A stretch of DNA of 54,249 nt, the filler included, from Bipalium vagum (Eukaryota), in assembly GCA_037834085.1 (NCBI GenBank). It is 3 parts of 3 records of this genome, joined end to end, with 100 filler letters (N's around TTAATTAATTAA, not from the genome) between each part and the next. Parts side by side here need not be neighbours in the genome. Positions count along the whole stretch, not along the records: positions 16,133 to 34,229 come from JBBMKC010040746.1; 2 more parts are not named here. One strand, 5' to 3'. Below, in pieces: positions 23,901 to 26,900 of this stretch. Each line of letters opens with the position of its first letter. The first letter of the stretch is position 1. The notes beneath the pieces are model-generated. The model saw only the letters and a list, made by a program, of their open reading frames with translations, searched no databases and was not told the DNA's origin. The position numbers and the translations under genes were made by a program.

Positions 23901-26900
23901 ATTCGTACGAAGATGTTCAAAACTGGTGTCCAATAGGATTCATTCTAAAAAAAATTTTATCGCCGCGGAATATCCATATTACCAAATTTATGAGAGAAAG
24001 TCATTTTAGTAAGGGGAATCCTTTCATTGATTGAAATAAATATTGAATTTTGTTAAAAAAAGTCTAAAAGCAATGCACCCTCGTAACATTAATTTTGTAT
24101 TGAATATTCCATGGAGTTCTAAATTTTACTTTTATTATTATTATTATGATTATTATATTTGTCAGACTGGTGATGGTGTTAACGATGCTCCGGCTTTGAA
24201 AAAGGCTGAAATAGGAATTGCTATGGGAAGTGGTACCGCTGTGGCAAAAAGCGCTTCTGAGATGGTTTTGGCTGATGATAACTTCAGTTCGATCGTTGCG
24301 GCTGTCGAAGAAGGTCGAGCAATTTACAACAATATGAAACAATTTATTCGATATTTGATATCGTCCAATGTTGGTGAAGGTAATTAATACAATCAATCTA
24401 TGATCCACAGTTATATCTGACTGTTACATCGTTATAGTCGTAAGTATTTTCCTAACTGCTGCTTTGGGAATGCCAGAAGCCTTGATTCCGGTTCAATTAC
24501 TCTGGGTCAATTTAGTGACAGATGGGTTACCGGCCACTGCATTGGGTTTCAATCCGCCTGATCTGGATATCATGGCCAAGCCGCCTCGATCTACGAAAGA
24601 ACCTCTGATCACGGGATGGTTATTTTTCCGATATTTGGCCGTAGGTACGTATGTAGGTGCAGCTACAGTTGGTGCTGCAGCTTGGTGGTTTACAATCTAT
24701 CCCAAAGGTCCTCAACTAAATTACTATCAACTGGTAAGTTTTTCCTTGTAATGGTCTCTACACAACGAATCGTTGTCCACAAAGCAATAATCGTTAAACA
24801 ATATTTATCATTGAGTGTATGATATGTAAAAATTGTAATGTTGCCGATTCCAGACCCATCACATGCAATGTTTAGCCGAAACGGAGAGCTTCAACGGTAT
24901 AGACTGTAAAATATTTTCCAATCCTAAGCCAATGACTATGGCTTTATCAGTATTAGTATTGATTGAGATGCTTAATGCAATGAACAGGTAACTAGTTCTA
25001 TCTGTCACGGGGAACACGAATCTATCACTGCATGATTTTGCCATTATTGAAGAACTTCGTCGGGGGGGGCGTAAGACAGGGGGAGGCTTTTGTGCTTACC
25101 GGGTTTAATAATTGTGCTGCACTCTTCAGAGCCATTATAGAATATGTGCAAAATATAATGAAAAACGATGCGGGGTTCCAATTGGAGCCTGACTCTACCA
25201 TTTAGTAAAAATTGATAAATGATATTTTGTAATATTTAGCCCACACAAAAGTTGACAGAAATAGTTGTTATCAAAGAATAAAAAAAGATCTTTCTTGGTT
25301 GAAACAGTTTGTAAAGAAACATTCAATAGTTTCGTCTTTAGGTCTCTTCTAACCACCTACCTGTTCACTTTTCATGAAAGTCTGTCCTAAACATGTTGAA
25401 ATGATTTATTGCCCAAGGAAAGTTTTGCTGATCTTATACTTGACAAGCATTGAAGTGTTTCGTGACTGTGGCAATTAAAAGACCTCAAATAATAACATCC
25501 AAGAATATTCAATTTAAACAAATTAAATTGAAAATCATTATTTAACTTTTAATATTGATTTTTACATTTATTTTTAAAATAAATCGATATAAATAAAAAA
25601 AAATAATTAAATTAAATTTTTTAACTGATTTTTAATTTTTAAATTGATTATTTTATTAAAAGTCAATAATAAAGAAATTGATAATAATACAATAATAATT
25701 AAATAGATTTTATTTTACATCCATCGAAATATTGATAAAACCGTTCAGGAATTTGGAATGGTAATTTTAGCACGATGGCAAGTAAGGATACCGGGAGATG
25801 ATCCAGTGAAGGGTTTTTCTGTCAACATTTTTCATAGACCTCATCCTTTTATCACTATTACATCTTCAAGCTTAAACGTTGTTGATTTTTATAACTAAAG
25901 ATTCCAATTTATATTTTATAATGGCTCAAGATATTTTTTAATCGATCTAGACACATCAGGCTCAATGTCTTGCTCAAGAGTCAAGATTTGAGGGAGTCGA
26001 CTGTTCTATTTTTGGTCATCCTAAACCGATGACAATGGCCCTTAGCGTCCTTGTTTCAATAGAAATGTTAAACGCAATGAACAGGTGAGATATTGCTGGA
26101 CCGATTATAAGCACTACGAAACGCATTTCTGGTGCCACAGTGTCTAGCAGGAATATCTTTTTTAATATTATTAAACCTTCCAACAAAGGGGCTCCTGGAA
26201 TAAAATAATTTTCAGTAAACTGAGGGAAACGCGTTCTGCTCTTCTTTTTTGCACTAAAGAGAAGACTTACTTATCGATTTAAGAAAAAATCATTGGGGAA
26301 AATGTCTTATTTTAGGAGCCCTTTTGTTCATATTAACTAATGAGGCTCTTTGTTTTTGATAACTTTTTAAAGATGGCAAATTCCACGAGTCCCTTTGAAA
26401 TAAAAAAAATGAAAGAAGTTGTTCTTTTTCTTAGGAGAATCTCTTTCTTAAAGATCGTCAAGAATTATTTAAACTATTATTTCCTGCTGAATGCTGCTTA
26501 TCAGGTTGATCTCCATCAACTGGAGTCCAGCAATATTTCATTAAAATAAATAAATGAATTAATAAATCGTAAAAGATGCCTCATTTGTTATTTGGTATGC
26601 CGTTATTGTTGCATTTTAGAGTGGGAGAATTAATTTAATGTTGGATTTTTCTCAAAAAAATAATATTCCCCCTTTTGTAAATGTTCTTTTCACTAAATAT
26701 TCGTTTATTATTTTTTACTTTTTCGAAAATTATTATTAAAAATCCCTGTTTACTTTTTCTTTTTTAAAGTAACTCAGTGTAATAAAATAGTGTTGTGCCA
26801 TTTTATCATGCTTGCTATGCTCGTTAATTGATTAATATTATTGATTATTATTATTATTATTATTGGTTATTGATTATTATTATTGATTATTATTATTATT

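Follow-up and report, generated by a model that had tools for sequence, protein, structure and literature searches.

To our knowledge, a handful of arthropod genes and some scattered cases in vertebrates supply most of the known examples of mutually exclusive splicing guided by RNA structure. Stems that mask splice sites include the donor hairpin of MAPT exon 10, TSL2 of SMN2 and the structures of Dscam exon 17. Exons regulated by Rbfox carry UGCAUG downstream of the activated exon. Competing pairings between a docking site and its selectors have been described for exons 4, 6 and 9 of Dscam, for 14-3-3zeta, for Mhc and for MRP1 (PMC6071210), and a model of bidirectional pairing has been described for exons 4.1 and 4.2 of Drosophila srp (PMC4691838). 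Both control by splice-site masking and exclusive splicing guided by structure have precedents (PMC6071210, PMC4691838). A search of the literature found no paper on the SERCA exon cluster considered here or on its RNA structures.

Comparisons of these systems with the SERCA locus in the window (the whole stretch of 54,249 nucleotides that was analysed, filler included) showed partial resemblances to several of them. As in the docking/selector systems, the locus combines a tandem cluster of same-length exons (A and B) with long intronic stems, and, as with docking sites of the 14-3-3zeta type, the intron that follows the last variable exon holds its strongest stem. However, the putative docking site has a single convincing partner, an above-chance selector for each exon is lacking, the pairings are unbalanced in strength, and a donor-occluding helix surrounds the stem. 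The locus shares with srp a two-exon cluster in which a segment of the middle intron (25076-25089) can pair either upstream (24736-24749) or downstream (26313-26328). In contrast to srp, both pairings are at chance level (a score of 27, against a mean null maximum of 31.8), and neither is a conserved block in the close relative L001. As in the masking stems, donor nucleotides in the window are enclosed by a stable helix, and reduced access of U1 is predicted. This helix differs from them in that it is long-range, its 424-nt loop being stabilised by helices nested inside, and in that it lies on one of a mutually exclusive pair of exons in a P-type ATPase gene. As at Rbfox-regulated exons, UGCAUG is found 20-67 nt after exon A at 11 of 16 loci, including the window and L001; this putative site concerns exon A, not the stem.

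The SERCA gene lies on the + strand of the window piece from JBBMKC010040746.1. Homologues of its upstream exon fall within Pfam PF00689 and are named Ca2+-transporting ATPase type 2A in their source. Exons A and B have the same phase and are 73% identical in amino acid sequence, and their length, phase, homology and splice sites are those of mutually exclusive exons derived from tandem duplication. The exons were searched singly; exon B matches residues 871-914 of SERCA1a (E 1.2e-11), which comprise the luminal L7/8 loop and the start of M8, and exon A is homologous to the same residues. Since 134 nt is not divisible by three, inclusion of both exons or of neither leads to a frameshift. The donor of exon A (GUAACU) is the weaker one, whereas that of exon B (GUGAGA) is consensus-like. 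The intron after exon B is 1538 nt long. The coordinates of the exons and of the elements around them are collected in the table.

Table. Exons, RNA stems and motifs of the SERCA exon cluster in the window, with the conserved stem of the relatives
Feature	Position	Strand	Basis or remark
Upstream exon	ends 24733	+	SERCA gene
Alternative exon A, 134 nt, A-type (THHMQC...)	24854-24987	+	AG/GT borders, translation
UGCAUG, Rbfox-type motif, 42 nt after exon A	25029-25034	+	conserved in L001
Predicted selector A, G-rich stretch beside a G8 run (25062-25069)	25075-25092	+	chance-level duplex with the docking site
S3 5' arm, 142 nt after exon A	25129-25146	+	18-bp stem with 25910-25927
Mini-hairpin with arms resembling the S1 core; source of the best docking-site partner in intron A	25172-25189	+	sequence reading
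S3 3' arm, 24-41 nt upstream of the exon B 3' splice site (expected branch-point zone)	25910-25927	+	p ~0.02
Alternative exon B, 134 nt, B-type (THQ.QCL...)	25951-26084	+	AG/GT borders, translation
S2 5' arm, last base of exon B and intron +1 to +17, contains the 5' splice site GUGAGA	26084-26101	+	18-bp stem
Middle helix, 5' side	26138-26153	+	pairs with 26481-26496; MFE fold of 26075-26550
S1 5' arm (predicted selector B)	26182-26203	+	22-bp stem with 26307-26328
S1 3' arm (predicted docking site)	26307-26328	+	22-bp stem with 26182-26203
Middle helix, 3' side	26481-26496	+	pairs with 26138-26153; MFE fold of 26075-26550
S2 3' arm, 441 nt into the intron, encloses S1	26525-26542	+	18-bp stem
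Downstream constitutive exon (SLSENQSL...)	27623-27740	+	frame scan, splice borders
Conserved stem of the relatives	L006:11852-11868 + 12162-12178; L011:2620-2635 + 3356-3371; L012:2947-2960 + 3240-3253; ten more loci		

Stems were identified by an ungapped scan and by duplexes in short windows; RNAduplex runs on whole introns gave meaningless full-length duplexes. The strongest stem, S1, is the one for which the original prediction had claimed 22 contiguous base pairs, and the count is confirmed (19 Watson-Crick and 3 G·U pairs, -31.6 kcal/mol by RNAduplex). With up to three mismatches allowed, its motif occurs in the whole window only at the two arms themselves, and shuffled sequences give an expectation of 0. 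In the scan of 24734-27622 S1 scores 48, beyond the best stem of every one of 200 dinucleotide shuffles of the introns (mean maximum 31.8, peak 44). The hairpin spanning 26175-26335 has an energy of -50.6 kcal/mol (z -6.1), and the base-pair probability of S1 is 0.92 in a partition function of 24700-27760. Two further stems exceed chance in the same 200 shuffles. S2 (18 bp, -25.9 kcal/mol) scores 39, where the second-best null stem never exceeds 35, and S3 (18 bp, -21.7 kcal/mol) scores 38, where the third-best never exceeds 33. With gaps S2 extends to 26083-26114 paired with 26495-26543 (-33.0 kcal/mol). In the 24700-27760 ensemble, S2 has a base-pair probability of 0.95 and S3 an equilibrium probability of 0.009.

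All three stems rely on G·U pairs. As the mismatches of S1 are all G·U on the sense strand, 9 kcal/mol is lost on the antisense strand, where the duplex reaches -22.6 kcal/mol. The top antisense stems of the scan score 30, 30 and 28, which is the chance level, against 48, 39 and 38 for S1, S2 and S3 on the sense strand. This drop to chance argues for selection on the sense RNA rather than for a DNA palindrome, and supports the earlier suggestion that the 22-bp stem is an RNA structure.

S1 is nested in S2, with the middle helix between the two. The resulting domain (26075-26550, 476 nt) has a minimum free energy of -133.1 kcal/mol (z -6.3). S2 covers positions -1 to +17 of the exon B donor (p ~0.005 in a splice-site-specific test), placing this donor within a helix as in splice-site masking. 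In regional partition functions, which as thermodynamic folds take no account of proteins or co-transcriptional kinetics, the exon B donor (-3 to +6) has an unpaired probability of 0.03, compared with 0.23 for the exon A donor, 0.24 for the upstream donor and 0.51 for the downstream one. Masking of the exon A donor was considered and rejected (p 0.37-0.42).

Several other repeats and pairings were observed around the domain. Further copies of the CCCUUUG-type core of the S1 3' arm lie in the same intron at 26387-26397 and 26670-26685, and the former can form 11 bp with the S1 5' arm (-17.0 kcal/mol). An ATT/GATT microsatellite-like array at 26831-26935, also in the intron after exon B, accounts for numerous spurious hits to AT-rich repeats and stems. 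Exon A (24878-24893) can form a 16-bp stem (-20.6 kcal/mol) with 26341-26356, just past the S1 3' arm; this stem, with a borderline score of 33 relative to the shuffles, would cross S2.

Comparison of the intron after exon A was possible with L001, the only close relative that includes it (upstream exon protein 96% identical); this contig covers exon A and 272 nt of the next intron. Just two intronic blocks are conserved. One of them, 25130-25145, falls in the S3 5' arm and is identical at 16 of 16 positions within an otherwise diverged intron (blastn E 1.4e-4). Because the equilibrium probability of S3 is low, the weight of this stem rests on the conserved partner arm. The other block is an identical 10-mer (25029-25038) that contains UGCAUG, and its position suggests Rbfox-type activation of exon A. 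When intron B of a close relative was sought by way of the downstream exon, no match above 81% identity was returned, and no relative extends over the docking site or selector B.

The relatives are represented by metagenome and metatranscriptome contigs; look-ups together with one metagenome scan yielded 96 loci. Among these the exon cluster is widespread; A-type exons occur in all relatives, and most genomic loci have both an A-type and a B-type exon. Five to seven tandem 134-nt SERCA exons with intact AG/GT borders are present at L042:3028-11446, L073:834-3475 and L039:751-3428, and the last exon of the cluster is B-type where the contig includes it (L042, L073). The other loci have two exon copies or one. 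Within L008 and within L011, the peptides encoded by the 3' halves of exons A and B are identical and those of the 5' halves differ, which suggests gene conversion between the copies. Many contigs are cDNA-like, each with one variant, A or B, and none holds two. L018 and L031 differ in type over the 134-nt segment at 122-255 (B-type and A-type, respectively, 71% identical), whereas their flanks are 98.3% and 99.6% identical; judged from the contigs, this pair is transcript evidence of exclusive use, or isoform switching, in a relative. Use of exon B is seen in L017, L018, L045 and L069.

The intron after the last variable exon contains a long-range stem in 13 distinct sequences of relatives, with the core GUCAACAGC / GCUGUUGAC. 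The 9-bp core is invariant, 13 bp are always paired, and compensatory double changes occur at three flanking positions. One arm of this stem resembles the 3' end of an exon (..TCAACAG|GT), and a second conserved pair, CACCUGGUG / CACCAGGUG, lies near it in crossing order. The window does not contain the sequence of the relatives' stem. L011 and L019 each have a stem, unrelated in sequence, that occludes the donor (p ~0.005 each). Such stems are significant at 3 of 20 loci including the window, 17 of 20 giving no significant stem, and at none of 16 previous-exon controls. The conserved inner stem of L011 lies within its donor stem, and in L019 the donor lies in an 831-nt domain with a z of -5.9.

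Control of exon choice by RNA structure, through masking of the exon B splice site, is plausible from these modelled folds. In the reading we tentatively prefer, at somewhat short of an even chance, S1 would be the inner clamp of an RNA domain of ~460 nt that starts at the exon B donor, S3 would cover the branch-point zone, and exon B would be attenuated. S2, as the outer helix, would bury the GUGAGA donor, and S1 and the middle helix would shorten the loop of S2 and stabilise it. S3 would cover the probable branch-point zone upstream of exon B, so that domain and S3 together would attenuate the exon despite its consensus-like donor. Exon A, with its weaker donor, would receive a boost from conserved enhancers downstream of it (UGCAUG at +42 and G-runs at +75 to +100). 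Which exon is chosen would then depend on trans factors that act on exon A and on the folding quality of the exon B domain, and the 134-nt length would remove transcripts with both exons or with none by frameshift. We infer the splicing effect and its direction from the stems and their statistics, the strand asymmetry, the conservation of the S3 arm and of UGCAUG, and the analogous stems of the relatives. Relatives clearly make use of exon B, and any repression would therefore be partial. It is equally conceivable that a masked donor serves for timing, or that the looping is activating.

The original prediction was that two selectors, one after each exon, compete for the S1 3' arm as a common docking site, pairing of selector A looping out exon B. 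Competing selectors that arise by duplication are a described mechanism (PMC6071210), and the pattern of L074 corresponds to that scenario: its introns A and B are genuinely paralogous (2316-2527 and 2924-3174), each with a homologous 18-bp hairpin that begins 150 nt past exon A or 168 nt past exon B, and cross-pairing of the two hairpins could compete. In the window the two motifs do begin at similar offsets, 88 nt past the end of exon A and 98 nt past that of exon B, and the exon A duplex can be drawn as predicted (16 bp, a 2-nt bulge and 7 G·U). However, at -13.8 kcal/mol it is at chance level. It ranks fourth among the partners of 26307-26328 within 24400-27700, and 37% of shuffled A-B introns reach -14.5 kcal/mol; the fraction falls to 3% when the site is restricted to +50 to +150 after exon A, a restriction made post hoc. 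The substitutions that preserve pairing in selector A add no support, since the site was picked because it pairs and the argument is circular. Selector A also folds locally (25071-25099), a caveat that the prediction itself had raised, or pairs with 24736-24749. The alternative pairings are far from comparable in strength: the docking site favours selector B by ~18 kcal/mol, at a distance of 104 nt versus 1220 nt, and the ensemble probability of the selector A pairs is 0.0000 versus 0.92 for S1 (24700-27760). Only selector B pairs strongly with the shared site; the best partner that intron A offers (-16.8 kcal/mol) is reached by 15% of the shuffles. L001 has a loosely similar G-rich stretch with G-runs collinear with selector A, but no conserved block there within its 272 nt of intron A, although adjacent blocks are conserved, which fits ordinary intronic G-run enhancers. 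Paralogy between introns A and B of the window was rejected, as they share only AT-rich low-complexity matches. Every test run here went against the competition, which is unsupported and which we consider very improbable; selector A pairs at chance level, and S1 lies instead inside a donor-sequestering helix. RNA-structure control as such is the part of the prediction that stands, made credible by the sense-strand stems and by the covarying stem in the intron of the relatives.

Other explanations concern the nature of S1 or the sign of its effect. S1 may be an inverted repeat of recent origin that plays no part in splicing and to which S2 and S3 are unrelated; it could have arisen by insertion of a small foldback or MITE-like element, or by a palindromic duplication in place. 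Its arms and the 103-nt spacer form a compact unit of 147 nt, S1 itself has no comparative support, and the window lacks the conserved stem sequence of the other relatives. We nevertheless think this origin unlikely: the borders of the unit show no target-site duplication, the 18-kb piece holds no further copy of S1, and the stem is nested exactly within an above-chance helix that begins at a splice site. A MITE or terminal inverted repeat would moreover be equally complementary on both strands, whereas S1 has the sense-strand G·U asymmetry described above. Alternatively, the S1/S2 domain may activate exon B by bringing its donor nearer to the downstream acceptor or by recruiting a double-strand-binding factor. 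Intronic pairings in srp and Dscam have documented approximation effects (PMC4691838), relatives do use exon B, and the domain would compact ~460 nt of the 1538-nt intron. However, a distance of ~1080 nt between the domain and the acceptor would remain, and the donor nucleotides themselves are inside the helix, making activation decidedly unlikely. The length of 22 bp is that of a small-RNA duplex, but a small-RNA precursor or an editing substrate hosted in the intron is barely credible for S1, which has a loop of 103 nt and no exon sequence; Rfam gave no match at E up to 1 in the window region, nor any hit in four relatives.

Masking of the exon B donor remains the reading that we prefer. A broader form of it is possible but doubtful: the clade would share an ancient module (an inner long-range helix and an outer helix that occludes the donor of the last variable exon), S1 would form its core in this lineage, and the module would govern the mutually exclusive cluster of two to seven exons for the luminal L7/8 loop and M8 of invertebrate SERCA. 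The gene concerned encodes a core calcium pump whose luminal L7/8 loop is exchanged by a deeply conserved exon cluster; the introns flanking the cluster contain covarying long-range helices in relatives and three beyond-chance stems in the window. If the clade-wide module is true, structural control of exon exclusivity would have arisen outside the insect docking/selector systems. If donor masking is true, one exon pair and three helices would form a compact system for studying the joint control of an exclusive exon choice by RNA folding and Rbfox-type enhancers, and would point to physiologically distinct SERCA isoforms in these animals.
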